From positions 248,001 to 312,000 of the forward strand of contig OZ025731.1 in NCBI GenBank assembly GCA_964019335.1: a DNA stretch of 64,000 nt, read 5' to 3'. The notes beneath the pieces were generated by a model. The model ran no database searches. It was given only the letters and a program-made list of their open reading frames with translations, and was not told the origin of the DNA. The stretch comes from Diplonema japonicum. Its lineage: Eukaryota; Protista; Euglenozoa: Diplonemea. This document shows, piece by piece, positions 25,608 to 48,218 of this stretch (position 1 is the first letter of the stretch; every line of letters begins with the position of its first letter). The translations under genes were made by a program, and so were the position numbers.

Positions 25608-26078
25608 CCCTTCCTTTATCAAAAAAAAAAAGGAACGCTTGGCAGCGTTATGCGTTTTGTCGGGGGAGGGGGAGAAAAAAGTTTTCCTTTTTTCCGACCC
25701 GATTCGTTTTAGAAAAAAAAAAGAATCGGCTAATTGTTTGTGCAAGCCGGCTCTTTTAATTTTTGTTTCCTCGCGTGAGGGAGGGGGATAATTAAGAGGT
25801 TTACAATCATTCTCTCTTAGTTTATTCCTCCCGATGACTTGTGTGTTCGTGAGGGGGGGGGGGGGGGGGGGGGAGAGAGGTTGTGCCTTTAAAAAAAAAA
25901 AGCGAAAAAAGAAATGAAAAAAAAAACCCCTGTCGCCATGGTTTTAATGGTGGGGGGGGTTTTTTTTTTCTTCTCTCTCTCTCTCTCTTTTTTTCTTCTT
26001 TTCTTTTCTTCTTTGTTTCTTTTAAACCCCTCTTTTTTTTTTCATAATCCCCGCTTGACGACCAAAAGACGACAAAAA

Positions 26079-28154
26079 ATGTCCCTGCTCCTCCTATGCA
26101 CCTGGATCGGGGCAACTTCCATAATACCTCTCAGCAGCCTCGAGACAGCCGGTTACATACAAGACGTGAAGGTGGTGGGGGACATCCTGTACGCTGCTTC
26201 AAACACATCAGGGCTGATCATATTCGACGTGAGCACTTCTCCGAAACCCCGGAAACTGGCGACGTTCAGCATGCACGGAATGACATCCATCGACGTTGCA
26301 GGGCAAACCCTCTACACGGTGAAGGGGACCAGCATCATAGCCATCGATGTAACATTCCCGGAGGCCCCACTTCTCTTATCCGTCACGAAAACCAAACATT
26401 TTGCACGCGGCATCATGGTGGACAAACAATGGGCGTATGTGGTGGGCGATGGCGGCGTGACTGCGTTTGATGTGCGAAACCCAAGCAAACCTATCGAAGG
26501 CAGCTCATACTTGCACTATGGTGAGGCCTACACATCAGTGTTCGCTTCTGGGAACATAGTGTCTGCATGTAGTTCGATGCGAGGCGACATCGTGAACTTC
26601 GGCGTGACCCCTCCTCGCCGGGAGAGGGGGAACAACGTCCGCGGCGTGTGCCGCGGCTTCAACGGGACCATCTACGTGTCGCTGCGAGGGATCGTTATTC
26701 TCATCGACGTAATGAACCCGGCGTCATGGGCGGTAGTCGCGATCTCCCCCAGCACAGAGATTCACGCATTCGCCGTCTGGGACCACTACGTTGCCACCAC
26801 AGGCTACCACGGCCTTTACATGTTAAACCAAAGCAATCAAAAGTTAGACGATCCCAAGGATTACATCATCGGCCACCTCGATTCCATAAAATACGGATGG
26901 CAGGTGCGGGTCCACGAGGACATTGCCTACGTGGCGGAGGGGCCCAGGGGGGTGCAGGTGGTGGATATCAGTAACATCTCGAACCCGACACTCGTTGGTG
27001 GCTACAACCCGATCAGCGCAGACAGTCGGGACATCTTCGCACAGGGTGGCTATGCCTATCTCTCTGGACCCGTTGCAAGCTTGCAGGTTGTGGACATCAG
27101 CAACCCCAAGAAACCACTCCTTGTCGGCAGGCTTTATGATGGAACCGGGAGCTCTGTGCACGCTGTGGGGGCAACTGTCTACGTTGCTGGGGGGACGCAG
27201 CTCATGGTGATCGACGTGAGCGTCCCGTCAAGACCTGTGGTGCTGGGGCGGCGCTCTGTGAAGTGTGCGGCTGTCCACGTGGTGGGGACGACTGCTTACG
27301 TCGTGACCCTGCGTGACGGCTTTCAGATCCTTGACGTGAGCAGCCCATCGTCCATCAAACTTGTGAACTACCTCCCTTTCGACTACCTTCTGAAGGCAGC
27401 GCTCTTGGTGTCGAACAACATTGCATACGTCGTGTCGGACAGGCTAACCCTCATCAATGTGCAGGAGCCAACAGTGCTGGGGACTGCATGCAAGGGGAGC
27501 ACACCAAGTGGTGTGGATGTGGTGGGGACAACGGCGTATGTGGCTGTTCAGGATGGCGGCCTGCAGGTGCTCGATGTGAGCGACCCCTTACAACCCGCTG
27601 TGCTGGCATCAGGGTGCAAGGGGTGCAAGGCTGCGACAGATGTAAAGGTCCACAACGGGACGGCCTACCTCACAACAAAGCAGGGGATGCAAGCGGTGGA
27701 TGTGAACAAACCAAGGGCCTTGCGTCTGGTCGACACCTTCCTCAACAAGGAACGGGACCTGAAAGGGGAAGAGGGAGAGGAAGAGGAAGAGGAAGAGGAA
27801 GAGGCCACGACACTGTCCATATCCGATGGGGTTGCGTACGTGAGCCGCAACGGGTTGCACGTGTTTGGGCTTGTTGACAGTTACCCCTTTGTCCCTGAGG
27901 AGGAACCTGAAGGGAAGTCATCGGGAGAAGGAGCCATGGTGCTGGTATCTGTGGTGGCGGGTGTTCTTCTGTGTGGTGCGGCATCATTCGTTCTGCTGAA
28001 CAGAAGGCAACGTGCCAGATCCAAAGCCGGAGGAGGTAAGAATGATGATGGGTACGCTGAGGTAGAGCTATGTGTCTCTGACACAAAGTTTGAAGGGGAT
28101 GACTGTCAAATGTCTGAGCAGACGATCTCCTGTCACCGAGAACTGCACAATTGA
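26079..28154 (+). CDS. LVIVD-repeat beta-propeller type I membrane protein, copy 1
   Basis: Signal-like MSLLLLCTWIGA; repeated AYV..GL.I.DVS.P..P units; acidic linker; TM; short tail. Confidence 0.9.
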   Translation: MSLLLLCTWIGATSIIPLSSLETAGYIQDVKVVGDILYAASNTSGLIIFDVSTSPKPRKLATFSMHGMTSIDVAGQTLYTVKGTSIIAIDVTFPEAPLLLSVTKTKHFARGIMVDKQWAYVVGDGGVTAFDVRNPSKPIEGSSYLHYGEAYTSVFASGNIVSACSSMRGDIVNFGVTPPRRERGNNVRGVCRGFNGTIYVSLRGIVILIDVMNPASWAVVAISPSTEIHAFAVWDHYVATTGYHGLYMLNQSNQKLDDPKDYIIGHLDSIKYGWQVRVHEDIAYVAEGPRGVQVVDISNISNPTLVGGYNPISADSRDIFAQGGYAYLSGPVASLQVVDISNPKKPLLVGRLYDGTGSSVHAVGATVYVAGGTQLMVIDVSVPSRPVVLGRRSVKCAAVHVVGTTAYVVTLRDGFQILDVSSPSSIKLVNYLPFDYLLKAALLVSNNIAYVVSDRLTLINVQEPTVLGTACKGSTPSGVDVVGTTAYVAVQDGGLQVLDVSDPLQPAVLASGCKGCKAATDVKVHNGTAYLTTKQGMQAVDVNKPRALRLVDTFLNKERDLKGEEGEEEEEEEEEATTLSISDGVAYVSRNGLHVFGLVDSYPFVPEEEPEGKSSGEGAMVLVSVVAGVLLCGAASFVLLNRRQRARSKAGGGKNDDGYAEVELCVSDTKFEGDDCQMSEQTISCHRELHN

Positions 28155-28341
28155 GTGTTCATCTCGGTGAAAGATTCTGTGTGCTTAATCATTCACTGCT
28201 ACCTCCCTTTTTTGAGGGGAGGAACATCTTGACATGGCAGGCTCACCGCAACGAGTTCTTTGTGGACCTTAAAAGCGGATGTATCAGCTTCAAGGGTACA
28301 AGGACCCTGTGTACTTTAATTTCACCCTCCCCCTCTTTTAA

Positions 28342-28705
28342 CTCATAAAGGACCGCTGTTTTTTTTTTTTTTTTTTTTTTTTTTTTGGTCTAAAAGGCGA
28401 TTTTGAACCTTTTTTTTTCAGATACAAAAATAGAGTGGCGAGGGTGCGTGACTGTTATCTTTCACTACCCGAGTTCTGGAGCGCGAAACGACCGTGCATA
28501 TCAGCCCCGGACGCGACCAAACTTTAGTGGTAGAGCATTTGAGAGAAGCAACTCTTGCAAAGGGCATGCTACCTGGAGGTTCCGTGGAAATCGCGCAATA
28601 GGGCTCCTCTTTAAAGAGAAGAGCTGCAGAACCGCTAAGATTTGCTTAGAAAAATTAAAAAAAAAGTCTTTTTTTAGACTGAAATCAGTTCCGGTCCTTT
28701 ATGGG
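28342..28705. mobile_element. piggyBac-type MITE
   Basis: TTAA-ctcataaaggaccg ... cggtcctttatggg-TTAA (14-bp TIR, 1 mismatch). Confidence 0.8.
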
Positions 28706-28912
28706 TTAAAATGAAAGAGGGAAAAAGAAAGGGAACCAAAAAAAAAGGCAAACCTGCAATCTGCCAAACCCCCCCCCCCCCCCCCCCCACGTGTATCCGT
28801 TTCATTGAAGACGAAACACCTGCTTATCTTGCTTAGTCTTTTTCTTGTGTTCTCTCGCAAGGGGAAAAGCTGTTTTTTAAAAAAAGTAGGACCACCAAAA
28901 AAAAAAAAGAAA

Positions 28913-30988
28913 ATGTCCCTGCTCCTCTTATGCACCTGGATCGGGGCAACTTCCATAATACCTCTCAGCAGCCTCGAGACAGCCGGTTACATACAAGACG
29001 TGAAGGTGGTGGGGGACATCCTGTACGCTGCTTCAAACACATCAGGGCTGATCATATTCGACGTGAGCACTTCTCCGAAACCCCGGAAACTGGCGACGTT
29101 CAGCATGCACGGAATGACATCCATCGACGTTGCAGGGCAAACCCTCTACACGGTGAAGGGGACCAGCATCATAGCCATCGATGTAACAGACCCCGAGGCT
29201 CCTGTTCTTTTATCCGTCACGAAAACCAGGAATTCTGTAACAAGCATCACAGTTGAGAGCCAATGGGCGTATGTGGTGGGCGATGGCGGCGTGACTGCGT
29301 TTGATGTGCGAAACCCAAGCAAACCTATCGAAGGCGGCACATTCTCAAAAGGCAGTTCTAAGTATGAGAAGTACACTTCGGTGTTCTCTTCTGGTAACAT
29401 CGTGTTCGTGTGCAGCAAGTGGTATTCCGACATCGTGAACTTCGGTGCCACCACCCCTCGCCTCGTGAAGAGGATTAGTAACGGTGGTGGCAGTAACTGT
29501 TATGGTGCTAAAGGGCTCTTCTACAGAACAACTTATAAACGCATTAACTATATCCAAGCGGATGGGAAGGTAAATCAGATCACTGTGGCGCGCTTTCCTG
29601 ATTACTTTCATGCACTAGACGTGGTGCATAACTCCATGGTCACGACAGGCTACCACGGCCTTTACATGTTGACTCAGTTCGAACAGGACCCACATGATTA
29701 CAGCGGCCACCTCGATTCCATAAAATACGGATGGCAGGTGCGGGTCCACGAGGACATTGCCTACGTGGCGGAGGGGCCCAGGGGGGTGCAGGTGGTGGAT
29801 ATCAGTAACATCTCGAACCCGACACTCGTTGGTGGCTACAACCCGATCAGCGCAGACAGTCGGGACATCTTCGCACAGGGTGGCTATGCCTATCTCTCTG
29901 GACCCGTTGCAAGCTTGCAGGTTGTGGACATCAGCAACCCCAAGAAACCACTCCTTGTCGGCAGGCTTTATGATGGAACCGGGAGCTCTGTGCACGCTGT
30001 GGGGGCAACTGTCTACGTTGCTGGGGGGACGCAGCTCATGGTGATCGACGTGAGCGTCCCGTCAAGACCTGTGGTGCTGGGGCGGCGCTCTGTGAAGTGT
30101 GCGGCTGTCCACGTGGTGGGGACGACTGCTTACGTCGTGACCCTGCGTGACGGCTTTCAGATCCTTGACGTGAGCAGCCCATCGTCCATCAAACTTGTGA
30201 ACTACCTCCCTTTCGACTACCTTCTGAAGGCAGCGCTCTTGGTGTCGAACAACATTGCATACGTCGTGTCGGACAGGCTAACCCTCATCAATGTGCAGGA
30301 GCCAACAGTGCTGGGGACTGCATGCAAGGGGAGCACACCAAGTGGTGTGGATGTGGTGGGGACAACGGCGTATGTGGCTGTTCAGGATGGCGGCCTGCAG
30401 GTGCTCGATGTGAGCGACCCCTTACAACCCGCTGTGCTGGCATCAGGGTGCAAGGGGTGCAAGGCTGCGACAGATGTAAAGGTCCACAACGGGACGGCCT
30501 ACCTCACAACAAAGCAGGGGATGCAAGCGGTGGATGTGAACAAACCAAGGGCCTTGCGTCTGGTCGACACCTTCCTCAACAAGGAACGGGACCTGAAAGG
30601 GGAAGAGGGAGAGGAAGAGGAAGAGGAAGAGGAAGAGGCCACGACACTGTCCATATCCGATGGGGTTGCGTACGTGAGCCGCAACGGGTTGCACGTGTTT
30701 GGGCTTGTTGACAGTTACCCCTTTGTCCCTGAGGAGGAACCTGAAGGGAAGTCATCGGGAGAAGGAGCCATGGTGCTGGTATCTGTGGTGGCGGGTGTTC
30801 TTCTGTGTGGTGCGGCATCATTCGTTCTGCTGAACAGAAGGCAACGTGCCAGATCCAAAGCCGGAGGAGGTAAGAATGATGATGGGTACGCTGAGGGGGA
30901 GCTATGTGTCTGTGAAGGAGGTGACTGTGAGATGTCTGAGGGTGATGCTCAGCAGGACGACCTTACAGAAGGTGACATCAAAACTTAG
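28913..30988 (+). CDS. LVIVD-repeat beta-propeller type I membrane protein, copy 2
   Basis: As copy 1; constant regions essentially identical, variable segment 29336-29703. Confidence 0.9.
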   Translation: MSLLLLCTWIGATSIIPLSSLETAGYIQDVKVVGDILYAASNTSGLIIFDVSTSPKPRKLATFSMHGMTSIDVAGQTLYTVKGTSIIAIDVTDPEAPVLLSVTKTRNSVTSITVESQWAYVVGDGGVTAFDVRNPSKPIEGGTFSKGSSKYEKYTSVFSSGNIVFVCSKWYSDIVNFGATTPRLVKRISNGGGSNCYGAKGLFYRTTYKRINYIQADGKVNQITVARFPDYFHALDVVHNSMVTTGYHGLYMLTQFEQDPHDYSGHLDSIKYGWQVRVHEDIAYVAEGPRGVQVVDISNISNPTLVGGYNPISADSRDIFAQGGYAYLSGPVASLQVVDISNPKKPLLVGRLYDGTGSSVHAVGATVYVAGGTQLMVIDVSVPSRPVVLGRRSVKCAAVHVVGTTAYVVTLRDGFQILDVSSPSSIKLVNYLPFDYLLKAALLVSNNIAYVVSDRLTLINVQEPTVLGTACKGSTPSGVDVVGTTAYVAVQDGGLQVLDVSDPLQPAVLASGCKGCKAATDVKVHNGTAYLTTKQGMQAVDVNKPRALRLVDTFLNKERDLKGEEGEEEEEEEEEATTLSISDGVAYVSRNGLHVFGLVDSYPFVPEEEPEGKSSGEGAMVLVSVVAGVLLCGAASFVLLNRRQRARSKAGGGKNDDGYAEGELCVCEGGDCEMSEGDAQQDDLTEGDIKT

Positions 30989-31219
30989 TTGCGCACGATG
31001 TCACCGAGAACTGCACAATTGAGTGTTCATCTCGGTGAAAAGATTTATGTGATTTAATCAAAAATTCACTTCTACCTACGTTGGAGCAGATGGAGAGTAT
31101 AAGGTGGCTCAATGGGCTCAATAGGGACACTGGGCTGCACTTGAACTATGTGTCATTTGACTACGCCCACCCCACCGCTATTTTGACTGTTCAAAAATAT
31201 CGTTTTTTTTTTTTTTTTT

Positions 31220-31355
31220 GTTACAAATATTTATCTTTCAAAAAATGATTTTATAGCTATATGCAACTTGTGCCGAGCAAAAAACTTTCGCAGCTTTTTA
31301 AAAAACCTTTTTTGCTCGTGCGAACAACAAAGACATAGAGTAATAAAGAATTATT
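31220..31355. repeat. ~135-bp dispersed hairpin repeat, copy 1
   Basis: Near-identical to 57662-57798; internal cgagcaaa/tttgctcg stem. Confidence 0.85.
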
Positions 31356-31422
31356 TTTTTTTTTATTCTCTTTGTGTTTTTTCATACAAAAAAGAAAAAA
31401 GTGGAATCACAATAAAAAGATA

Positions 31423-33483
31423 ATGTCCCTGCTCCTCCTATGCACCTGGATCGGGGCAACTTCCATAATACCTCTCAGCAGCCTCGAGACAGCCGGTTAC
31501 ATACAAGACGTGAAGGTGGTGGGGGACATCCTGTACGCTGCTTCAAACACATCAGGGCTGATCATATTCGACGTGAGCACTTCTCCGAAACCCCGGAAAC
31601 TGGCGACGTTCAGCATGCACGGAATGACATCCATCGACGTTGCAGGGCAAACCCTCTACACGGTGAAGGGGACCAGCATCATAGCCATCGATGTAACAGA
31701 CCCCGAGGCTCCTGTTCTTTTATCCGTCACGAAAACCAGGAATTCTGTAACAAGCATCACAGTTGAGAGCCAATGGGCGTATGTGGTGGGCGATGGCGGC
31801 GTGACTGCGTTTGATGTGCGAAACCCAAGCAAACCTATCGAAGGCGGCACATTCTCAAGCTTCAATGTGTACACCTCTGTGTCCTCTCTGGGAAGCACCG
31901 TTATGATATGTGGAACAGAGGTAATCACAGTGGTGAACTTTGGTGTCACCCCCCCTGCGCACTTAGGGCGCCAGTATATACATAGTTTAAACTGCCATTC
32001 GAGCAGCGGTGTTGAGGACACCTTCTACATAGCTGGCCGGAGGGGTGTTTATACCATCAGTGCAATATCGCCTCACGACCCGGTGGAGCGCTTCACACGA
32101 GGTTTCACCGGCACTATGAGGGGGATAGACGTGCTCCGGGGCTCCGCCTTCGTCGCAGGCACTGATGGCTTCCACACATTGAACGCAACTGAAATGGATC
32201 TCAGGGTCGGCCACATCATGACCCCCATGCATGGTTGGCAGGTACGAGTGCGTGAAGACATGGCCTACGTGGCAGAGGGACCGAAGGGGGTGCAGGTGGT
32301 GGATATCAGTAACATCTCGAACCCGACACTCGTTGGTGGCTACAACCCGATCAGCGCAGACAGTCGGGACATCTTCGCACAGGGTGGCTATGCCTATCTC
32401 TCTGGACCCGTTGCAAGCTTGCAGGTTGTGGACATCAGCAACCCCAAGAAACCACTCCTTGTCGGCAGGCTTTATGATGGAACCGGGAGCTCTGTGCACG
32501 CTGTGGGGGCAACTGTCTACGTTGCTGGGGGGACGCAGCTCATGGTGATCGACGTGAGCGTCCCGTCAAGACCTGTGGTGCTGGGGCGGCGCTCTGTGAA
32601 GTGTGCGGCTGTCCACGTGGTGGGGACGACTGCTTACGTCGTGACCCTGCGTGACGGCTTTCAGATCCTTGACGTGAGCAGCCCATCGTCCATCAAACTT
32701 GTGAACTACCTCCCTTTCGACTACCTTCTGAAGGCAGCGCTCTTGGTGTCGAACAACATTGCATACGTCGTGTCGGACAGGCTAACCCTCATCAATGTGC
32801 AGGAGCCAACAGTGCTGGGGACTGCATGCAAGGGGAGCACACCAAGTGGTGTGGATGTGGTGGGGACAACGGCGTATGTGGCTGTTCAGGATGGCGGCCT
32901 GCAGGTGCTCGATGTGAGCGACCCCTTACAACCCGCTGTGCTGGCATCAGGGTGCAAGGGGTGCAAGGCTGCGACAGATGTAAAGGTCCACAACGGGACG
33001 GCCTACCTCACAACAAAGCAGGGGATGCAAGCGGTGGATGTGAACAAACCAAGGGCCTTGCGTCTGGTCGACACCTTCCTCAACAAGGAACGGGACCTGA
33101 AAGGGGAAGAGGGAGAGGAAGAGGAAGAGGAAGAGGAAGAGGCCACGACACTGTCCATATCCGATGGGGTTGCGTACGTGAGCCGCAACGGGTTGCACGT
33201 GTTTGGGCTTGTTGACAGTTACCCCTTTGTCCCTGAGGAGGAACCTGAAGGGAAGTCATCGGGAGAAGGAAGTACAACTCTTGCAGTAGTAAGTTTGGTT
33301 GGCTGCAGTATTCTGTTGACTGCAGCAACAGTACTGCTGGTGAGAAGGCTGCGTGCTGCAGGTGGTGAAGATGGTGTTGGGGCCAGTGACGTGTTTGGAG
33401 CTCCACAGGAAGCCGACGGGCGCGAAGCTCTAGAATGCAGCACTATGAAACACTCTGATCAAAGTTCTGAGAATATAGAGTAG
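31423..33483 (+). CDS. LVIVD-repeat beta-propeller type I membrane protein, copy 3
   Basis: As copies 1-2; variable segment ~31859-32285; different TM and tail after 33270. Confidence 0.9.
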   Translation: MSLLLLCTWIGATSIIPLSSLETAGYIQDVKVVGDILYAASNTSGLIIFDVSTSPKPRKLATFSMHGMTSIDVAGQTLYTVKGTSIIAIDVTDPEAPVLLSVTKTRNSVTSITVESQWAYVVGDGGVTAFDVRNPSKPIEGGTFSSFNVYTSVSSLGSTVMICGTEVITVVNFGVTPPAHLGRQYIHSLNCHSSSGVEDTFYIAGRRGVYTISAISPHDPVERFTRGFTGTMRGIDVLRGSAFVAGTDGFHTLNATEMDLRVGHIMTPMHGWQVRVREDMAYVAEGPKGVQVVDISNISNPTLVGGYNPISADSRDIFAQGGYAYLSGPVASLQVVDISNPKKPLLVGRLYDGTGSSVHAVGATVYVAGGTQLMVIDVSVPSRPVVLGRRSVKCAAVHVVGTTAYVVTLRDGFQILDVSSPSSIKLVNYLPFDYLLKAALLVSNNIAYVVSDRLTLINVQEPTVLGTACKGSTPSGVDVVGTTAYVAVQDGGLQVLDVSDPLQPAVLASGCKGCKAATDVKVHNGTAYLTTKQGMQAVDVNKPRALRLVDTFLNKERDLKGEEGEEEEEEEEEATTLSISDGVAYVSRNGLHVFGLVDSYPFVPEEEPEGKSSGEGSTTLAVVSLVGCSILLTAATVLLVRRLRAAGGEDGVGASDVFGAPQEADGREALECSTMKHSDQSSENIE

Positions 33484-35118: not shown

Positions 35119-36195
35119 ATGACCCCTCTCTTCCTATTGTTCACAACAACAACAGCAGCGCTGACCTTGCAAAGCAAAATCGACGGCTTCGGCAAGGCAA
35201 CGGACATGAAGAGTGTCGGGACGCTCCTCTACGTCTCGTCAAACGAGTCAGGACTGGTCATTCTCAACATGAACTCTCCCACCGATCCAAAACAACTCGG
35301 AACCCACCCCGCCGTGGCCCAACCCTCCGCAATTGACGTAACAGGCGACACCGTTTACATAGCAGGGAAGGACGAACTGATGGTTTTAAACACCAGCGAT
35401 CCTTCCAACCCGAAGCCCTTGGGAACGCTGCCGATCACAAATTGCACCGCCTTAACCATCGTGAAACAGACGTTGTACATAACAAGTAGTGACGGTCTGC
35501 AAATTCTGAATGTAACCGACCCGTCATCTATAACACCGATTTCCGATATCAATCTTCAGTACACAGTTCAAGGAATGGCACTTCAATGGGGAATCGCATA
35601 TATTACTGCTGGGGACGTCTTCGCCTTGATAAATGTCAGTCCCACGGAACCAACGGTCGCGGTCACAATGACAAGCCAGGAAAACAACAATACTGGCCAT
35701 CGGGCAGTGGATGTTCTTGGCAACGTTGCTTATGTTGCTGTTGAAAATGGTGGTTTGCAGACGTTTGACATCACTTCACCTTCCAAGCCTGTCGCCCTTG
35801 CTTCTTACTGTGATGGGTGTGTGTCGGGGACCAATGTGGTGGTTTATGAATCGACAGCGTACCTGACTACTGTTGACGGGATGCAGGCGGTAGATGTTGG
35901 GTCCCCCGCTTCGCCCCGTATGTTGAGCTCTTATAAGTTCTCATCTGAGGATGTTAACTCAGCTATCGCTTCTTCTGGGATTTCTGTTTTTGTAGGTCGT
36001 TCGGATGGGGTGTACGCATTTGAGCATGTTTCTTCTGGGAGTTCGTCTGATGAAACGGCCACGGCGGTTTTGGTGTGTGCTGTGGTTCTCGTGTCGGTGG
36101 TGCTGAGCCTGTGCGTGGCGCAGCTAGCTGGGAAGCGGGGGGTGGAGATTACACGGGATGCGGGCAAGAAACCGGAGTTCGAGGATAATTTGTAA
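35119..36195 (+). CDS. Divergent, shorter LVIVD-repeat type I membrane protein (copy 4)
   Basis: Signal peptide; AYVAVENGGLQTFDITSPSKP..CDGC..TAYLTT.GMQAVDV homologous to the constant region of copies 1-3; C-terminal TM. Confidence 0.88.
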   Translation: MTPLFLLFTTTTAALTLQSKIDGFGKATDMKSVGTLLYVSSNESGLVILNMNSPTDPKQLGTHPAVAQPSAIDVTGDTVYIAGKDELMVLNTSDPSNPKPLGTLPITNCTALTIVKQTLYITSSDGLQILNVTDPSSITPISDINLQYTVQGMALQWGIAYITAGDVFALINVSPTEPTVAVTMTSQENNNTGHRAVDVLGNVAYVAVENGGLQTFDITSPSKPVALASYCDGCVSGTNVVVYESTAYLTTVDGMQAVDVGSPASPRMLSSYKFSSEDVNSAIASSGISVFVGRSDGVYAFEHVSSGSSSDETATAVLVCAVVLVSVVLSLCVAQLAGKRGVEITRDAGKKPEFEDNL

Positions 36196-36202
36196 GATCA
36201 CT

Positions 36203-36241
<39 letters not shown>

Positions 36242-36372
36242 GACCCTCGCAGCAAGAACCCGCCAGAGCCCCAGAACGGGGATAACGGGGACTAAGCTCA
36301 GCTCGGCCGGTGAGCGCAAAAAAAAAAAAAAAAAAAAAAAAAAAACGCATACCTTGTTCTTTTTTTCTTTTT

Positions 36373-36409
<37 letters not shown>

Positions 36410-37082
36410 TTCATTCCAGGTTTCTACCCGGGCAAAGTGCAAAAACAAGGGAAAAAAAAAATTAAAAAAAAAAGAAGAAGCACATGCACACATAAAGAAA
36501 TAGAACAGTTTTTGTCATAGACACCCGCCAAGGGGTGTCGAATGACAATTTAGTCTAAAAAAAAGTGTGATTCTAAGGTTATCCTTTCTATTCTTTTTTT
36601 TTTTTCCCCATTTTTTTTTCTTCTTCTTGTTAAAGGGTAGGGTAAATAGATGAAAGTGCTTTTCTATCTATGTCTATCTGACCTCTGGTTCTTTTCTTCC
36701 CCCCCCCCTCCTTTAATTATTTCCTTTCTGACCTACCTCCCCTTCTCCCTTTGATACTATTATTTTATATTTTCATTCTCTTATGTTGCAAATGTTCCCC
36801 CCCCCCCCCCCCCCATTGGTCTGAATACCTCTGATAAGCTATAGGATTGCTTAAAAATAAGAAGGGCAAAAAGGCAAAAAAAAAAAATTAAAAAAATGGA
36901 AAACTTTTTCTTTTTTTATATACATAAAATTACTGCCTTCTTCCCCCTTCCTTTTTAATTATCCTGTGTTTTTTCTTTTTTTTTTTTTTCTTTCTCTATC
37001 TCCTCCTGCATATCAAGTTCGCGCCGCTATGAGTAATTTCATTAGGTAGAATTACATTCGTGCACACAAACAAATTGAGCGC

Positions 37083-37125
<43 letters not shown>

Positions 37126-37200
37126 CCCTGTGTCTCGTTGGTTACACTTCTGTTTCCCTACAACGAAAACCACATTTCCTCTCTTTTCAGCATTAGCAAA

Positions 37201-37236
<36 letters not shown>

Positions 37237-37576
37237 CAAATGAAATCAAAATAAATTCATCTGAGTGAATTCCACCTTAAAATAATGTCCTTTCCCCCCA
37301 AAAAAAAAACAGAAAAATAGAAAAAAATTGAGAATAGGTTTTTTTAGGGGGAAAGTGGATTGGTGATTCATTCTGGTCCCTCCCTCTTATCTTTTTCTTC
37401 GGTTTCCTAGGGGAGCTCGTTGAAAATATTTAAAAAAAAAAGATTTTTAGAAGTTGTAGTTTTTATTATTTATTATTATTATTATTTTTTTTTATTCTCC
37501 TCAAAAAGGGGTGGGAAAGAAAAAGAAAAAGAAGAAGGGCAAGTCCCGCTTCTTTTTTCTTTTTGTTAACTTTCTG

Positions 37577-37611
<35 letters not shown>

Positions 37612-37671
37612 AGAAACGAAAAAAAGATCGCCATCTCGAAGTGTTCGCGGGAAAAAAAAAAGGAAAGGGCT

Positions 37672-37714
<43 letters not shown>

Positions 37715-38160
37715 CCACTCCTTTTATTCTGTCGCGTGTTGCAATGGCCCGGGTACACCGCCCTTTGGAGAAATGGCAGGCGGTATAGAGAGAAAAAGAA
37801 AATCAACTGAAAATAGTGAAAAAAAAAAATTCGAGCAAAAATAAAAAAAAGAAGATCCTTCCATCTTTCCCCCCCTCCTCTTTCTTTTTATCATATTCCT
37901 ACATGGAGCATGAAAAGAATAGAAAGCCAAGCTTATATCCGATACTTTCAAAGAAGTCTTTTTTTTTTTTTTTTTTTTTGAATATTCTGACGCATCAATG
38001 GAAAATAGAAAAAAAAAAAAAAGAAATGTCACTTGGAAGGCTGTTCCTGATCCGCAAATCCTTGCCTCTCTTGAGGTTCATCTTTCGCCCGGCTCCATCT
38101 TCTTGTGGGCCGTTTGCGTAAACCACTTCGTTTCCTGCAGCTGGAGGGCATTTATTTTAA

Positions 38161-39921
38161 CCCATAACACTCCGGGGCCTATCTACATAGGGGTCCCTTT
38201 TTTGCTCCTTTTCATAATTTGAGGGGGAAAATGGCAGCATTTAACCCCCGTTTGCAGGTAAAACGGGTTTTTTGGACCAGGAAAATTAAAAAAAAAGTTC
38301 AAAAATAAATAAAAATACAAAGGGAATGAAGAGTTGAATGGCCGTAGGGTGCTCAAAAACGACCATGTCAAAAATGGGTTGTGCACGGGGGGGTGTAAAT
38401 TGAGCATCCTGGGACAAAAAAGGCAGCATCAGGACCCCTCAGATGTCTCAGACCGAGAGAAGTGCCTATTTGCGGGTGGAATATCGGCCTCGAAATCGTC
38501 AAGAGGCCTTTTTGGGGTGATGGAAGAGTGGTACGAAAAAAGCACTTATTTGGACAGAGGTGTTGGTTTCAGGTGTAACATTTGTAGATTGTGCGTTTTG
38601 TGCATTCTTTCAACCTGCAGACCCTGGAGGTGCCCCCTTTGAGTGGCTAGCGGTCACGTTTGGTGTAATCTGGGGTATCGGGTGTGTGTGCACCACTAGT
38701 TGGGTGCCGGGAGTGGTGTTTTTGCAACGTTGGACCCATCAATTAGGCTCTCTCGAAAGCGCTCTTTAAAGCAGCCAGGGTTGTGTATCTCTTTGGCATC
38801 CCTGAACCATATTTTATTTGAAGTGCATAGCAGTTAACTATTGTCACTTCTAGGGTCCACCAGAAGAGTCCGCAACACCCAACGAAATGCAAGCCCCTCA
38901 CAGTTATTTCACAGGGCTTCGGCCAGACCCACAGTCGAAAAGTAGCTATCGCAAACTACCGTGTTGTCATTTCCCCGGAAAGGCTCTGTTAACCCCAGCC
39001 CCGCTTTTTCCACAACACTGAAATCTTCAAGTGCGTGCCCCTCGATTTTGGTGGCGTGGATGTGAAAACGCAAAAGATAACCCGTGCTCGTTCAGTTTAG
39101 GCAGTAGATTTTTATGCCATATCTTTTACGCTTGAAAGGACAGTAGACCCGCAGCCCCCAATTGCCCCGTGAAGGTACGAGTGTCTCGTCAATGCTTAAT
39201 TATTTTCCTGGCACTGCTGCTTTTGCCCACTTGTCACCAATTCTGTCCAGAAACCCTCGTATCTTCACAACACATCACCGTTTGACTCTTCTGTGTGAGT
39301 GAAGTGGAGGCTACTTTTGATTTCCCAGTACCGTCTCCTGGGCATCGTGTTACTGAAAAGGGGGATTTTCATGGGTCCTGTGGACCAATACGACTGCTGA
39401 TTCTGGGCACCCGTAAACCCATCGCAATGCTCAATCCGAGTAAGCGGTAGAGTCCTGTGTCGAAATTTTATCAATCTCAGCGTCCTTTTGCTTGTTTGTC
39501 TCTTCTTGGATGACGTCTGTTGTATAAAAAAACCGAAGGAATAACCATTTTGCGTACCACGGGACAGCTTTTTTTCTCCCCACTGGCCTATTTTATGGTC
39601 TCTATGTACCAACTCCCTTACCCATGAAGGTTGGACCTCGTCCGTAGCTGTTTTGGCTTTACCTTTGCGTTTTTTGGGAACAATTTGGGCACAGTATGCA
39701 CACCCGTTATTTTGCGTTTTTGGCCTATCTACTCGGATTTGGGACCCACTTGGTGGGTGGATAACAAGTTAAAGTGATGCAGCGCAGCGTGAATTGCAGT
39801 TGAAAATAACTCCTCACTATAGTCGTTCTTGGAGATCCAGGGGTCGTGGGGACGAAAAAGTACTTAGAGAAAAAAACGATTTTTCAAAACGACAAATATT
39901 TGCGCCTTGGAGTGTTATGGG
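38161..39921 (-). mobile_element. Decayed piggyBac element
   Basis: TTAA-cccataacactcc ... ggagtgttatggg-TTAA; minus-strand fragments YWST..MPRRRYWEIKSSLHF, IDETLVP, KRYGIKIY, VVCDSYFST. Confidence 0.9.
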
Positions 39922-40167
39922 TTAAAAAAAAAAAAAAAAGAAAAAAAAAAACTATTTCTGAGGATAGCAAGGTCTTTTATAATGTCAAACACAAATGACA
40001 TTCAGGCCTCAATGCCCCCCCCCCCAAAAAAAAGAAGTCCTTGGTTGACAGGTATTTTGCTGTTATTATTTTTTGTCAATAGAATTGCGCCCCTCCCCCC
40101 CCCTTTTTTTCAATGATTCTGTCTATTATGAAGAAACAAAAAAAAAAAAAAAAAAAAAGCAAGCGAT

Positions 40168-40215
40168 AGCAACAATGAGTCGAGACTCGTTATTTTTGTT
40201 AGTAATAAAATAGCT
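40168..40215 (-). mobile_element. Remnant of the YR-element left terminus
   Basis: Reverse complement agctattttattactaacaaaaataacgagtc resembles 9284-9312 agctatttattgccaacaaataatgagtc and folds back on gactcatt. Confidence 0.5.
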
Positions 40216-40263
40216 ATCATTCTGGCACGATTTTTTTTTTACCATCGTATGAGGCTTTCAAGG

Positions 40264-40753
40264 CTAGATACGGGCCATACATCTCGACGCATGACATGGT
40301 GCTCCAGCCATTGACAGGGGCTGATCTGAGAGCCGGGAGCGAGAGGACGACGAGGAGAGGGGGCCGCTAGGGGTCTTGCTGAAGAGGTGGCTACCCTTCC
40401 TGAACAAGGGGTGGTCCTTCATTGAAGGTTTACGCGCTCTGGTGCCCAGTGCGAGACAGCAAAGAGTGGGAAGAATGCTTTCCCCGCCAACGCGAAGACA
40501 AGGGTACACACCCTTCGACATCTTGGGGGCCCGACGGCACACGGCTACGACAGGAGACCACTCTTCTCCTCGAGCCAAACCGCCCCCTACCTAGCACGAC
40601 TCCAAGCAATGTTTCTCGCCCAGATGCCGTCATCTCATCGCAAACAGCCACCGCAGGCACCAGACAGCAACCGCAGAACGGTGACCGGTGACCGGTGACC
40701 GGTGTGAATTTCACCCTGAATGGTGAGCACCCACCCGCACACCGAAATTTATC
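40264..40753 (+). mobile_element. Second, more deleted copy of the non-LTR retroelement (3' end plus short A tail)
   Basis: GPLGVLLKRWLPFLNKGWSF vs GPIGVLRNRWLPFLGKGWSF; 40480-40690 near-identical to 5027-5238; shared 3' motif. Confidence 0.85.
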
Positions 40754-40884
40754 AAAAAAAAATTTTTTTATATATATTTTTTTGTGAGCCCTTATCCTGT
40801 ATTTGCTCCTTTTTTTTTTTTTTTTTTTTTTATTTCACCAAAAACCCACTTTAAAACACATTTCAAGGACAACACAGCAAAACG

Positions 40885-41157
40885 ATGAATGTCCTTCAGT
40901 GGTGCCACGACCCTTATGCGCTGTGTGTCAGGGGTCAAGAATCTACCGCCCTATCCTGCACGACGGAGGGGAGCGACGGTCTTTCGGCGGAATATCTCAG
41001 CACAGACGAGGAAGGGGAAGTTATAAAGAACAAATTGAAGCGATTTGCAAGGAAGCATCACCTGTGTGTGGGTATCTCATTTGAAGACGAGGTAGAGGGT
41101 ACCCACCGTTATAGGCACGACCCGTATTCTGTGAAATATAGTGTGAAGTTGTGTTGA
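40885..41157 (+). CDS. Small hypothetical protein with two HDPY motifs
   Basis: 90-aa ORF with WCHDPY and YRHDPY; complex-sequence island. Confidence 0.55.
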   Translation: MNVLQWCHDPYALCVRGQESTALSCTTEGSDGLSAEYLSTDEEGEVIKNKLKRFARKHHLCVGISFEDEVEGTHRYRHDPYSVKYSVKLC

Positions 41158-42366
41158 TGATGGGAGGAAAGAAGAAAAAAAAAAGGTGTGATGGTGGTGC
41201 AAAACGTTCGCTTCAAAAAAAACGGGGGAGAAGAAAAGGGGGGGGTGCCATAAAATAGTTTTTTTTTTTGAAGTCGTCATTGTTTTGGCAAGGCATTTTC
41301 CCCCTCTCCCCCCCTTTTAATGTACTAACGAAAAAAAGAAATACTGTAAAAAGAAAAGGGGGGGGGGGAGAGAAGGGTGTTCTTTTTTCTTTTCTTCTTC
41401 TTCTTTTCCCCCCACTGTAAAAATCAACTAGCTTAGCAAAGCAAGCACGCAAAATCCCAGTTTTAATCGTGCTGCGAAGGCCTAATAAGGCCTTAGTCCA
41501 ACCCCCCCAGAAAAATGTGGTCTTTTTTTACTTCATTTTTTCGGGGGCGGATCAAAAATCAGGCTGTGGACTTCAACGTTCTTTTTTTTTTATAAAAAAA
41601 TAATATAATAACACCCCCCCAAAAAAAATCTTTTTAGGTTTAAAAAAGCTTTCTTTTACTTTTTACTGTGCTTTTTAAGTAGTGTGTGTGTAGCACTAAG
41701 AACACCGAAGGCTACACAGGTCTCCAGTCATGCGCGGGTGGTTATCTCTATTAGATAACTTTCGGTAAAGAAACGACAAACTTCCCCCAAGCCCCTCTTC
41801 CCTGTCCCTCATTTCTTAAGTTTCTTAAGAAAAAGAAATATGGCCTTAGTTACTACTTTCTTTTAACTCTTCCCCCCCTTTTACCACAAAAAAACCTTTT
41901 TTTGAGAAGCCTCCCTTCCCCCCCACCACTTAATTATTTCAAAAAAAAAAAAAAAAAAAAGAAACATGCTGTAAAAGCAAAAAAAAAAAAAAGAATACAG
42001 GACGGGGGCAAAACGTCCAGGGTTTTTTTGTCGCATTCGGGAGTTTGTCCGCTCGGCATTAAAATTCTCATTATAGCTTTTCAGGCAGAAACCTGCCGTA
42101 TGTTGCCCGAAAAGCGCGTTGAGAGGTGTTGCCAAGCAGGGAAAAGAAAAATCGTTGCCAACATTTTTCCTCTTAGGTCCTGCATACCATACCTATCCTA
42201 CCAGCCTCCATGTAAAAAAATTTTTTTTTACAGTAGTTTTTTTTTTCTTTTTTGTTTTTGGTGCTTGATATTATGTGGAGGTGGGGTTGAGCAGCTGCTG
42301 ACGTATAAAACATTCAGCGGTAAAAAAAAAAAAAGAGAAGAAAAAAAAAATAATATCATTTTTTAA

Positions 42367-42667
42367 GGTGGTGGGGATAACATGGAAATATAAGAAGTAC
42401 ATCAGATGTGTTGTTCGCTGTTGACCTCCTCGTCGGTCATCACCGGTAGCGCCCGAGTGGAAGAACGTAACGCAGATGCTCAGGGTGACGAACAAGCAGC
42501 AAACTTCACGAGCGCAGAATCTTGGTTACCCGGGACGCCCCGGCTAGGGTTGAGCACACCGCACGCATTAAGGACACGACGCGGAACGCAGAAGAAGCTA
42601 CTGCTCGGCCGAGGAGCGCCCCCTGTAATCAAGTAGGTAGTTCGTGCTTCATTGCACGCTTAACGCC
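42367..42667. repeat. 301-bp dispersed repeat (SINE-like), copy 2
   Basis: Matches 25246-25546. Confidence 0.9.
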
Positions 42668-43936
42668 GGTGTCTCCAAAGACCTCCTTTAACTTTTTTTT
42701 TTCTTTTTCTCTTGTTCTCTTTTTTTTGTGATTCAACAAAGAATTCGGTCCATTCGTCTTTCTTTATTTTGTTGTTTTATTTGTTTTTGTTTTTGTTTTT
42801 CTTCTTCTTTTTTTTTTTTTTTTTTATTTACGTATTCGTTTTTCAGAAATTAATTTTTTTCCATTCCCTTCCAAAGAAGAAGAAAAAAAAAAAAAAAAAG
42901 AAAAAAACACAAAAAAAAAAGACAATTCAGGCATGAGGGTTTTTCTTTTTTTACTATTCTTCTTCTTCTTTTTTTTTTCTTTTCTATTTCCGTTTCTTCC
43001 CCCCCTTTTTTGTAAACCAAAACAAAACCAAAAATTCTTTTTTTTTTGCTCTCTCCGTCTGTGCGGGGGTTTCTCGGAGGGGGGAAAGAGAAAAAAAAAA
43101 AAAAAAAAAGGATGAAGGGTCATCAGTTCTGCTTTTTTTCTCTCTCTCTCTTTTTTTTTTCTTTTTATTGACGGAAAGAGTAGTTGCCGGCTTTTGGGCC
43201 TTAAGAAACTCTTTTTTTTTTTGTTTTTTTTTTCCCGAATTGAAACCATCTTTATATTGCGCCTCGCCAAGGGAGAAAAAAAAAAAAATGTTTCCATCAC
43301 AAAAAAAAAACAGTGTCTGAGAAGGCTGGCAGTTAAGCAAGGTTACCTAAGGTAAATAAACCCCCTCCTAATCTCGTATTTTTTTTGTGGGGCAGCAAGT
43401 TCTTCTAAGGGATTCAGGTGTAGCATTCTTTTTTTATTATTATTGGCAACGGGGTAACAAGGGAAGGCAAATGGTGGACCAAGTGATGAGTTTTAATAGT
43501 ACTAATGTTTAAAAAAAAAAAAAAAAAAAGAAGAAGAAGAAGAAGAAAAGACCGGGTTCTAAACCTTCACAGTTTTAACCTTTTGTCTTTCTGAAGTTTC
43601 TTTGCCAACAAAAGTGATGGGGGGGGGGGGGGGGGGGGCAGGAGTATCTTACCTCTCCTTTTCATAGTTCGAAAAAAAACTTTTTTTTTTTAATCATGAG
43701 CTTCGCCCCCGCGTGGAGGAAAAGATGGCTATTTTTACTGCCAACAAAAAGTACACCCCCTGGAAATACTTTGTCACCTTAACATACTGAAACAGGGCAA
43801 GAAATCTTTTTACAAATCTTTTTTTAAAAGATTTTTCTGTTTCTTTCTTTGTCAATGGGTCATTTGTGTTCCCCCCCCCCTTTTTTTTCCTTTTCTGACA
43901 AGTTCGTAAAATATATGTACATGTAAACCTCCTTAA

Positions 43937-45743
43937 CCATCTACCAACGGACCATTTTTGCCCACCAGGGGGTAAATTTTCAAAACTTTCAAAAAAAGCT
44001 ATTCCAGCGCAACGCCGGGGCTATATGCCCCCGGAAATGCCTCCAGATGTCCCAATTCTAGAGAGAGGGTGCCCACAGCAGGGTCCACCCCCACAACATT
44101 GTCAAAAATATCGTTCCTGAAGTGCCCGAGAGGGGATACAAAAAACAAGTCAAAAAAAATCGACTGTAAAATTCTATAAAAAGCTATTTAAGGCCTTCTT
44201 GACGCGGTTCGTATGTGCCCCAGGGCTGGGGGACTTCTTTTTTGACCCCGGGAGGGGTTTCTGGGGGGGTATCCCCGGCAAGGTGGTAGTCTTTGAAGCA
44301 CGGAGTCACGCAAAGTTGTACCAAGCAGGCTGAACACTGAAATAGGGGTCTTTTCGACTTGCAATGCTTGCACCGCACGTTGCACTACTTTTTCGGGGAA
44401 ATGGTCCCAGAAGGTACTGTCACGGCGCATTGGGGTCTCAGAGCACTCGTTCTGTGTTTCGGGGCATGGTATTGGGGCAGCCTGCTCTGTAGTTGACTTT
44501 ATCTGTTGTTTAGACTGCCTCCCTAGTAGCCCTTCGATGACTGCTTCTTTGAAAGGCGTAAATCCACTGTCGTTCGTACTCAGGGCGTTGGGGGGCAAGG
44601 CTTCTTTCCAAACAAGCCAAGCATTCGCCAGAGATTTACCTAACAAGTACAAAAATACTTTTAGGGGCCACTTTTAAGTCATAAGGGTGCGTTTATGGCG
44701 TTTTGTCACAGCATCACCCAGCGTCGGTTCCGCCCATTGCGGTGTTGTAAATATGCACTTGGTGGGGGGCGGGATGTCCTTTCCGGCTTTCATTCTCTTT
44801 TGGCGGACACGTCAAATTCGACTTCACCGGAACATCCAACGTCGATAGAAAGCACGCTGGCATGATGTCATGCCACGTTGTGGTGCAAAGGATGCTCGCG
44901 TGCTGGTGGAACTGGGTGTCCCCACGGGATGCGCGTCCTTGGCATGCGGCCTCGCTTCTTTGGGGCATCCATGATCTCCGGGAGGCCTTTGCGATAAGTA
45001 GAAGTCAGCACGCTTGTTTGTTTCGCTGTGGAAACACAGATTTCCCAGAATAGTCAAAAAGCGGTCTCTTGACATGACGGTGGCGTACCCAGGGGTGTGG
45101 TTGAGAGACGTGGAGCCAGTGTGCCAGTAATCAGAATAATCTGGCTTGATATCCAAGTCCATCGACAAAAGGACACCTAGGAAGGTATGCAGAAGCAGCA
45201 TCGAGATCCAGGGAGACACCTTTTTTAGCCGCATTTGCCACATTGTTGGAAGTTATGACCCGAATAACGTTTGGGACGAGCATTTGGAGAATATATGGTA
45301 TGGCGTTGAGCCTTTGATGTCAAAACAGGGTCCACAAGGATTTCGATCTTCACGAGACCGGATGCCTTCCAACTGCTCCGGCTTTGCCGTCCAATCACCC
45401 TGCTGTGACTCGGAATCGGTCGAATTCGTATCAGAATCACTGTTTGTATCAAAATTGCATAATAGGGATGAGCCATCGTGCTGCCATCACTCATAACGTC
45501 CTCTTCCGGCCCTCTTTCCGGGCGCCTTTTTTTGAAGTGATTTTTAAGGGTAAATTTGGGCTGGCGTTTTTTTTCATTTTTTCATTTTCTTGTTAAGTTA
45601 GGGCAGCATTTAGTTTATTTTTTTTATATTTTCCGCGCAGGACCCCGCCGGCAAGAAAGGGCCGGGCCGTATTGCATTGAAAGCCCTTTGCGTAAAAGAT
45701 TTTTTTTCAAATCGTCTATATATAGACGCTCGTTGATAGATGG
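43937..45743 (-). mobile_element. Decayed, internally deleted piggyBac element (different family from 38161-39921)
   Basis: TTAA-ccatctaccaacg ... cgttgatagatgg-TTAA; fragments DYWHT..MSRDRFLTILGNLCF, YNTAMGGTD, C-terminal RCKHC..CSAC..LC..CFKDYH. Confidence 0.9.
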
Positions 45744-46190
45744 TTAAAAGTTTTTTTTTTTTTTTTTTTTTTTTTTGCCAATGATGGAAAACTCCAGTAT
45801 GCCCGTGTGGCACAACTAACTCAAGCTGGGCAAGAAAAAAAAAAAAAAAAAATGCTTCGAGGTTTATATTTTCTTTTATTTTCCCTTGTTTGTGGGGGGG
45901 GGGGGGGGGGGGGGGGGGCAGTTGGTTAAAAAACAGTGTTTTCCCAGCAAATTTTATCTTCTTTTTCTTTTTTTCTTTTTTTTTTCCATTCTACCTCCCT
46001 CACACTCCTTATATGCTTTACAAATATTTTTTTTTCCCCCTTTCCTTTTCCCTTCATCTTTCTATAGAGCGCTGCCTCCACCCTTTTTTTTTCTTTTCTT
46101 TTTTTTTTCCCAGGACGATCCACGGTTATGGCGGGAGGCCTGCGGAATAGATATCTACGACTAGGCTGTAGGTGAGCGCAAAAATGCATA

Positions 46191-46231
<41 letters not shown>

Positions 46232-46984
46232 ACTCCATACTTATTACTCTACCCCTTTTTTTTTCCTATTTCTTTTATTTAAGGAGTCTTTTATAGCACC
46301 AAGCAAAGCTGGGGCAAGTAACGAAACAGAGTTCGATGAGGAGCAGTCCTATTTTTGTACCATTTCATTTCCCCCATTTTTCTTTGGGGTTTTCGGTATC
46401 CTCGCTTCCCTTCTCCATCTTAAAACAAAAAAAACCCTTTGCAAGGTAAAGAGATGAAGGAAAAAAAAAAAAAAAAAAAAAGAGAACGAAAAACAAAAAA
46501 GAAGGAAATGAAAGATTGAGGTCCTCATGGAACCTTAAAAAAAACAAAAAAAAAAAGATATTTTGTTTAAGTTCTTTATGTTCATTTTTTTTTTGCATGA
46601 ACAAGAAAAACAATATATTGATAATGAATTGTTATTGCTAAAAAGAGTAGTGGTGGCATTGCTGGGCTTATCCTTCTACAGGTTAGTCCCGGCTGTGCAC
46701 AAACAACAATCAACCGACTCTTTTTTTGATTACAAGAGAAAAACAAAAAAAAAAATCTTTTTTTCTAATTGCCTGCTGGGCAGTGCTTGTGCAGGGCGCT
46801 ACCAACACTGGCCTCTGTATCTTCTTTTTTTTCATCACTTACAGGCAATGTGAAGATGTAGTTGTGCAGGTGCCTCAGGTTTCTATGAGTTTCGCATATA
46901 TAAACAAAAATGTCTTCATTTTTTCCAAACTAGATCCGGGGCTGGGTCCGGTGCTGCTTAAAAGGCTCAGAAAGAAACATGCTT

Positions 46985-47015
<31 letters not shown>

Positions 47016-48218
47016 CTTTTTTTTTTTTGACAGCCTTCTCCTTGAAATATCAAAGGGGACAGAGTTTGGTGGGAATCCAGATTACCACCATCGTGTTTTT
47101 TTTTTTTTTTTTTTTTTTCCGTCTCGAAAACCAGACTAATCAGCCAAGGGAAGAATAAAGTCACCTTGGATTCAAGAATCCGTAAATTTTATTTAGTGCT
47201 TTACTTCCCCTCGGGCGCTGATTTCTAAGGTCTCAAGGGGTTGGATTGTAACTTGGGTTTTTCAGGGGCGGGCCTGTCCGATAAGCCGTATTGGCCTCAC
47301 TCTCCCCCCTATATATTTACGCCCTAAAGAAATCTTTAAAAAGAAAAAGAAGAAGAAAAGGTAGGTTTGAGTTTGACTTTATTTCCAGGGGAGGGGGGGG
47401 AAATGGCGTCTTGAAAAAAAATTGAGTGACTCAACTGATGAACGGGTGGAGGGGGGAAAAAAAAATGACTCATAATTTGTTTCTTTTTCTTTTCAGTTTT
47501 CTCGTTTTACCCCTCCCCCCTTGTTGTATTAATAAAAGAATGCGGTTACATCTAGAGACTTCCAAAAAAAAAAAAAAAAAAAAGAGGCAACCAAGACCTT
47601 CAGTATTCTTTTTCTCTCTATTTTTTTTTGGCGTTTCAACATATAGTATCTGGTTTCCTACAAACATTCCTATCTCCCCCCCCCCCTTATTTGTGAGAGC
47701 TCGTAATAGAAGATTTTTTTAAAAGAAGAAATACCTGCCGATGAGAATTTTTTTTTATTATTCCGTTTCATTTTTTTTTCTTATGTTGTAGAGCTCCCGA
47801 ACCCCGCTAGGGTTCGGGAGAGTGGGGAGGGGGGGGGGGGGGGGGGGGGAGAGTCTCTGATGTAATCTAAAAAAAAAAAAAAAAAAAGCCATTTTTCAAA
47901 TTTGCCAAAGAAACCATTCCCAAGCGTTCTGAAGCCGGATATTCCGGTTCCCAAATCATCCACTTTTGACCCACCCACCCACCCTTTTTGTGGCCAACAA
48001 TGGGCACGCTGAAAATACAAAACTCGAAGCGACAGATACCCTATTTTGTTGACCTGACTTATAGGGGGCTTGGTACCAATGTCCATGATTGGCCAAAAAA
48101 AAGATGACGAACATGGGGCAGCATACTGCTTAGGCACCGAATTTTGGTTACCAGAACGCCCCTGGCTAGGGTTGGGTTGCAATCAAAGCCCCATTTTATT
48201 TTTTTATATATGGGTCGA

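Follow-up and report, generated by a model that had tools for sequence, protein, structure and literature searches.

Within a stretch of 64,000 nucleotides (nt) from the diplonemid Diplonema japonicum (contig OZ025731.1, positions 248,001 to 312,000; referred to below as the window, with positions counted from its first letter), three co-oriented, intronless genes of the LVIVD family lie in tandem and open with the same signal-peptide-like start. Their coding sequences (CDS) are a mosaic of tracts that are identical between copies and of segments that differ even at synonymous sites, one of which is a variable segment (V) in the middle of each gene. Table 1 presents an overview of the trio and its parts. 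In what follows, the origin of this mosaic, its reality in the genome and the likely function of the variable segments are considered in turn.

Each of the three predicted proteins matches PF08309, the Pfam family of LVIVD repeats, at 145-150 bits against a cut-off of 20.2 (E about 1e-43 to 3e-43). An AlphaFold2 model, for which 44 family and bacterial sequences served as input, reached a predicted local distance difference test score of 84 and a predicted template modelling score of 0.79. It contains 55 strands making up fourteen four-stranded blades, followed by a disordered tail, and the blades are modelled as two seven-bladed propellers. The top Foldseek matches are likewise tandem seven-bladed propellers (Utp21, PorZ 5m11 and 2ymu), and a sequence search of the PDB found no relative. 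The N-terminus is hydrophobic, and a predicted transmembrane (TM) helix at residues 620-649 has basic residues after it. The proteins are therefore predicted to be type I membrane proteins with a signal peptide, one TM helix near the C-terminus and a short tail in the cytoplasm, and they presumably reside at the cell surface. A first description of the locus, made from the letters alone and termed here the sequence-only reading, had proposed LVIVD beta-propeller surface proteins; Pfam and the model support LVIVD propeller membrane proteins.

Table 1. Features of the LVIVD gene trio and its surroundings, in window coordinates
Feature	Coordinates	Strand	Equivalents in other copies	Remarks
Copy 1	26079..28154	+		691 amino acids (aa); open reading frame (ORF) and translation
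Copy 2	28913..30988	+		691 aa; exact transcriptome match P0124
Copy 3	31423..33483	+		686 aa; own TM helix and tail; exact transcriptome match P0126
N-terminal constant block	26079..26354	+	31423-31698 (exact); 28913-29188 (one synonymous change)	begins at ATG; signal peptide, blades 1-2
Patch A	26355..26426	+	29189-29260 and 31699-31770 carry the other form, common to copies 2 and 3	72 nt; covers blade 2 strand D and blade 3 strand A; this form in copy 1 only
V1	26502..26869	+		368 nt; blades 4-6, residues 142-264
V2	29336..29703	+		368 nt; 56% aa identity to V1
V3	31846..32285	+		34-37% aa identity to V1 and V2; 5' border at 31846 against copy 1, at 31859 against copy 2
26-nt island within V	26799..26824	+	29645-29670	identical in copies 1 and 2
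C-terminal constant block	26948..27932	+	29782-30766; 32286-33270	985 nt; blades 7-14; identical in all three copies
Copy 3 TM helix and cytoplasmic tail	33271..33483	+		unrelated at synonymous sites to copies 1 and 2
Hairpin island	28131..28172	+	30999-31040	42 nt; identical between copies 1 and 2
Fourth family member, half-size	35119..36198	+		358 aa; one seven-bladed propeller with signal peptide and TM; exact transcriptome match

Identical runs were taken from a MAFFT nucleotide alignment, and windowed identity was followed in 50-nt steps with the flanks included. Copies 1 and 2 are identical over 26095-26354, 26427-26501, 26799-26824 and 26870-28062 (1193 nt), copies 1 and 3 over 26078-26354, 26427-26501 and 26948-27932 (985 nt), and copies 2 and 3 over 28929-29348 (420 nt) and 29782-30766. 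All three copies stand at 100% in the 50-nt windows across approximately 26096-26345, 26446-26495 and 26962-27911, while identity in V ranges from 26 to 77% and the intergenic flanks on both sides are unalignable. Homology from copy to copy ends at the ATG, and the DNA upstream consists of non-homologous A-rich and pyrimidine-rich tracts. The length of V in the trio ranges from 368 to 440 nt; V1 and V2 are of exactly equal length despite several indels between them. In the model, V spans three units of approximately 41 aa, from blade 3 (strand D) to blade 6 (strand D), so that it comprises three entire blades of the N-terminal propeller, framework included, and is not confined to the loops of a constant frame. 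Between the copies, framework residues are all that survives, and V retains them together with a confident fold in the model. On this alignment, the coordinates that the sequence-only reading gave for the constant and variable blocks all hold, as do the equal lengths of V1 and V2 and the mosaic sharing of the 72-nt patch by copies 2 and 3 and of the 26-nt island and the TM by copies 1 and 2.

Synonymous (dS) and non-synonymous (dN) divergence, estimated by the Nei-Gojobori method, separate the parts of the genes sharply. The constant block has a dS of 0 and a dN of 0 over 328 codons. For V, dS is 1.0-1.6 and dN 0.48-0.86 (dN/dS 0.45-0.6), which agrees with the earlier remark that V is diverged even at synonymous sites; for patch A the values are 0.63 and 0.33, and for the TM and tail of copy 3 they are above 2 and 0.91-1.06. 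Tracts of 985-1193 nt at dS = 0 directly adjoin segments at dS 1.0-2.9, with sharp borders. The grouping of the copies also changes along the gene: patch A unites copies 2 and 3, the 78 nt proximal to V, the TM and the 26-nt island unite copies 1 and 2, and the first 16 nt unite copies 1 and 3. Such a pattern cannot be due to chance, and the 26-nt island inside V is probably a micro-conversion tract.

Identical blocks in neighboring genes could also be produced by assembly or polishing. The assembly of D. japonicum YPF1604, 62.5 Mb in size, was built with hifiasm from 102x PacBio HiFi reads together with Hi-C (PMC13598402), and the 7.4-kb array is short enough for HiFi reads to cross it. Two further studies of this organism provide Logan contigs that match copy 1; these end at 26354, 26472, 26899, 26948 and 28062 and show no differences. 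V1 is represented in both studies by one contig (26472-26899), and a single contig of 1115 nt (run X4) covers 26948-28062 without differences. The contig ends are the branch points expected if the constant blocks are truly identical. Since the HiFi assembly and independent contigs that break exactly at its borders agree, an artifact is ruled out; this independent check covers copy 1 and uses assembled contigs, which places rare variants beyond its reach. The constant regions, whose possible homogenization by assembly had been raised as a concern by the sequence-only reading, are therefore identical in the genome itself.

The trio belongs to a large family. Searching the genome in six frames yielded 114 matches, which fall in at least 58 open frames and include arrays on C62, C106 and C110; the family comparison rests on the loci returned by this search, with the large C106 and C110 arrays left out. 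Sister tandem sets on C62 are L010/L012/L013 (182-195 kb), L009/L011 (84-92 kb) and L024/L026 (78-85 kb). These three sets, compared as arrays T2, P1 and P2, are 100% identical from the ATG onward, have internal patches at 73-93% identity and are separated by unalignable spacers. In contrast to these mosaic arrays, the dispersed pairs L025/L027 (C18, C11) and L007/L015 (C105, C80) are evenly about 90% identical, without long identical tracts. Because tandem copies are homogenized and dispersed copies are not, homogenization requires that copies be near each other, as is characteristic of gene conversion acting locally. The proposal that gene conversion homogenizes the scaffold is accordingly upheld by sharp borders, discordant sharing, dS of 0 beside dS above 1 and the like behavior of three other tandem arrays. 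The conversion mosaic is a property of the LVIVD family, and probably of the genome.

Some further observations concern the edges of these genes. In the dispersed pairs, alignment of the flanks fails immediately outside the ATG and the stop codon even though the CDS has a dS of only 0.15-0.25, so that their spacers have diverged further than dS would lead one to expect. The homogenized tract has its 5' border approximately 0-45 nt from the start codon in each of the four arrays examined (26078, 28929 and 31422 in the trio). These borders adjoin A-rich and pyrimidine-rich low-complexity DNA, and their position may reflect either a homology barrier or the trans-splice acceptor of an RNA-templated event.

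Variable segments with sharp borders in a constant frame, and a 26-nt micro-tract inside V, would also suit programmed cassette variation, in which segments are exchanged with donors or expressed exclusively, as in VSG, pilin, MSP2 or chicken immunoglobulin conversion. Six-frame and DNA searches of the 62.5-Mb assembly, however, find only the three expressed V segments and no donor for any of them. V1, V2 and V3 are each other's closest relatives genome-wide, with the next matches insignificant; being mutually closest and without other copies, they have diverged in place. The genome likewise holds no donor for patch A elsewhere, nor any for a patch of the T2 array that was searched for. The label of hypervariable cassette given by the sequence-only reading is not supported, since there are only three V segments, all of them transcribed, no silent donors, differences that affect whole blades, a dN/dS of 0.45-0.6 (at saturated dS) and a V2-type segment in another organism.

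That organism, designated organism C, is known from a run of 2014 labelled as a different organism, and its constant block is approximately 97% identical to that of the trio. One of its contigs crosses from the N-terminal block into a cassette of the V2 type, with a spacer of 85 nt as in copy 2. In this contig, 35 nt fit copy 2 (they differ from copy 1 at five sites, which is also how many differences copy 2 has) and 15 of 16 further nt are copy-2-like. Organisms B and C both carry the form of patch A found in copies 2 and 3. Judging from these few bases, V2 appears at least as conserved between organism C and D. japonicum as the scaffold, which argues against a fast turnover of V.

All three V segments are transcribed. 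The copy 1 protein matches a D. japonicum transcript in EukProt (EP01064) residue for residue, and the Trinity isoforms of TRINITY_DN18064_c0_g1 from this bulk transcriptome contain all nine combinations of V with tail. Six of the nine are assembler chimeras without a genomic counterpart. All nine are expected from graph paths across the shared 1-kb block, so that every V and every tail must be present in RNA; for the same reason, recombinant transcripts as a sign of V shuffling are ruled out. A further supposed member of the cluster, the 48-aa P0123, proved to be an unrelated sequence. Diplonemid genes are organized in unidirectional clusters thought to be polycistronically transcribed and trans-spliced (PMC10161547), which makes a separate promoter for each copy unlikely. 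With its place in such a cluster among housekeeping genes, the presence of all three V segments in the transcriptome and the stability of V2 in organism C, programmed cassette variation is very improbable for the trio, which is probably a set of three old fixed variants and no switching or hypermutating cassette system.

Constant blocks without any difference and sharp borders could, in principle, also mean that the duplicates are young, and that V was either the target of hypermutation or imported from lost or foreign paralogues. The spacers and tails have diverged like V, however, which makes the duplication old, and the synonymous sites of V are saturated. Imported segments are difficult to reconcile with V segments that are mutual nearest relatives, and with a V2 conserved across organisms. 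Neither a reverse transcriptase nor a template repeat is found near the trio. A recent origin of this kind can hence be given almost no credence.

The probable explanation is an old tandem triplication under concerted evolution whose outcome is a set of three receptor or adhesin isoforms, fixed and co-transcribed. A gene encoding an LVIVD double propeller of the cell surface would have been triplicated in tandem long ago, and recurrent short-range conversion between neighbors would have kept about 80% of the CDS identical, from the ATG to blade 3 and across blades 7-14. V, the 72-nt patch, copy 3's TM and tail, the distal tails and the whole of the intergenic DNA and untranslated regions (UTRs) would have been early escapees that are by now too divergent for conversion. 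For the spacers, indel-prone low-complexity DNA would be a sufficient cause of escape, while functional divergence would be the likelier cause for V. The resulting isoforms would have their scaffold in common and differ in blades 4-6, in their UTRs and, in part, in their cytoplasmic tails. Since the system would be polycistronic, differential regulation of the isoforms would act through their differing UTRs, as in trypanosomatid arrays (PMC4413820).

It may be asked whether function is needed to explain the escape of V at all. If indels and chance divergence alone had blocked heteroduplex formation, the isoforms could be functionally equivalent. Such a neutral history fits the dN/dS of V, which is below 1 and matches the family baseline of 0.37-0.5 obtained from dispersed pairs; it also fits the several indels between V1 and V2, the low-complexity A/T tracts between the genes, which are likewise unconverted, and the varying positions of the patches among arrays. 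It fits less well with the location of V, which is kept in all three copies even though active tracts lie on both sides. In theory, a segment between two converting tracts would be overrun while still similar, unless conversion there was selected against. Transcription of all three V segments, their retained framework residues and confident fold, and the conservation of V2 in the related organism C also speak against purely neutral escape, as do face-specific differences in the family and a dN/dS above 1 in array T2. Neutral escape on its own is consequently regarded as unlikely, and selection for different binding specificities, beyond a mere divergence barrier, is inferred to have shielded V from conversion.

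The sister arrays provide better evidence for diversifying selection than the trio of the window. Their aa differences are concentrated in the B-C and D-A loops, with odds ratios of 6.3 in array T2 (p 4.6e-9), 10.1 in P1 (p 5.3e-7) and 4.2 in P2 (p 2.9e-9); the dispersed pairs give an odds ratio of about 2.2 (p about 0.002). Family-wide, these loops are the least conserved parts of the protein (0.36-0.38 vs about 0.6). From the beta-meander topology of the blades, as opposed to measured positions, the B-C and D-A loops are expected to lie on one propeller face. In the patches of array T2, dN/dS is 1.7-2.5, with 11 synonymous vs 68 non-synonymous changes (binomial p 0.005-0.013). Of the 53 codons that differ in this array, 21 have changed at two or more positions although dS is about 0.02. 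The L010/L013 pair has a dN/dS of about 2 and many multiply changed codons, and in array P1 omega is 1.3, which is not significant. With this indirect support from the sister arrays, selection for a diversity of V that serves ligand binding is plausible.

Several results weigh against a selective explanation. The dN/dS of V is measured at saturated dS, where it neither shows nor excludes positive selection. The differences within V fill whole blades, and their enrichment in loops is weak (odds ratio 1.4-2.0). Of 34 sites of V in the B-C and D-A loops, 2 are invariant, vs 19 of 99 elsewhere (p = 0.10). In other arrays, the variable patches are found at residues 161-260 and also 341-460, or take up the whole C-terminal half in P2, and so coincide only partly with blades 4-6. 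Because the positions differ between arrays, patch location is not a fixed property of the family and may be a historical accident. Finally, the conservation of V2 in organism C is based on about 50 comparable nt and the length of a spacer.

Concerted evolution with preserved differences has precedents. In Kinetoplastea, the euglenozoan sister group, tandem arrays evolve in concert and differentiated copies are selected (PMC4413820). The trypanosomatid arrays of beta-tubulin, adenylate cyclase, amastin and GP63 (Jackson 2007; PMC4413820) resemble the trio in their unidirectional clusters, homogenized CDS and divergent UTRs and spacers, and they likewise preserve individual differentiated copies despite conversion. 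The trio differs from them in that its genes encode an LVIVD propeller, a family not described in kinetoplastids, and in that its unconverted part is an internal three-blade module instead of an end copy or a UTR. A second parallel is offered by the HNWD genes of Podospora anserina (het-d, het-e, het-r; PMC2873952), where propeller repeats under concerted evolution also keep specificity positions diverse. The HNWD proteins are cytoplasmic STAND proteins that use WD40 repeats for allorecognition, with repeat exchange within and between genes and extreme polymorphism, whereas the trio comprises predicted membrane ectodomains, exchange between neighboring genes and three stable variants. With VSG, pilE/pilS and msp2, the trio has only the layout of constant frame and variable insert in common; it has neither a silent archive nor a single expression site, and nothing points to switching.

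The new element of the locus is the LVIVD family itself; concerted evolution of propellers and homogenization of arrays are already known. LVIVD proteins have been described as bacterial and archaeal surface proteins (PF08309; PMC2447325). The D. japonicum family shares their repeat but differs in its eukaryotic, predicted type I membrane architecture and in its at least 58 genes. The closest relatives outside D. japonicum are bacterial proteins at 23-34% identity. Two word-indexed protein searches for eukaryotic relatives gave bacterial and archaeal matches only, which says little as such searches are insensitive at 30-40% identity, and no relatives were found among metagenome contigs. No earlier description appears to exist of a protist in which membrane-anchored LVIVD genes have expanded to at least 58, and none of the papers mentioning LVIVD in the literature collection searched deals with diplonemids.

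A wider reading, tentative and rather doubtful at present, is that diplonemids possess a large germline repertoire of LVIVD-propeller receptors in which conversion keeps the scaffold and selection protects modular elements of specificity. With the same reserve, these elements might be whole blades in the trio and loops of one face in the sister arrays. If true, this would be a way for a eukaryote to recognize prey, symbionts or self by means of a propeller family whose other known occurrences are all on prokaryotic surfaces, with a logic analogous to the diversification of fungal HNWD or plant NLR genes. The family of at least 58 membrane-anchored LVIVD propellers, with differences focused on one face, is a concrete candidate for such recognition. 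The trio in turn represents a natural blade-swap experiment, with the same scaffold and three differing blades. Concerted evolution of tandem arrays of the trypanosomatid type operates in diplonemids too, and it affects the annotation of their genomes, transcript assembly (as the Trinity chimeras illustrate) and orthology calls.

The surroundings of the trio are those of a one-strand gene cluster. All but five of the ORFs of at least 200 aa in the window are on the forward strand, and four of the five reverse ones overlap larger forward ORFs. Neighbors include genes for CDC50, an O-fucosyltransferase, a CCCH zinc-finger protein, a dual-specificity phosphatase and a subunit of methylcrotonyl-CoA carboxylase, and the window matched no Rfam family. 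Inside this otherwise gene-dense cluster, some 15 kb (36200-51800) have no ORF of at least 200 aa and a G+C content of 34-45%. A short distance downstream of the trio follows the half-size family member, which shares 38% identity with blades 8-14 of copy 1.

A last feature is the 42-nt island shared by copies 1 and 2. It overlaps the stop codon of copy 1, while in copy 2 it belongs to the 3' UTR, 10 nt past the stop. A search of the genome found no copies beyond these two. The 3' regions around the island are diverged, and the island itself can fold into a hairpin with a free energy (dG) of -21.1 kcal/mol and a z-score of -4.0. It may be a regulatory element of the 3' UTR or a micro-conversion tract.

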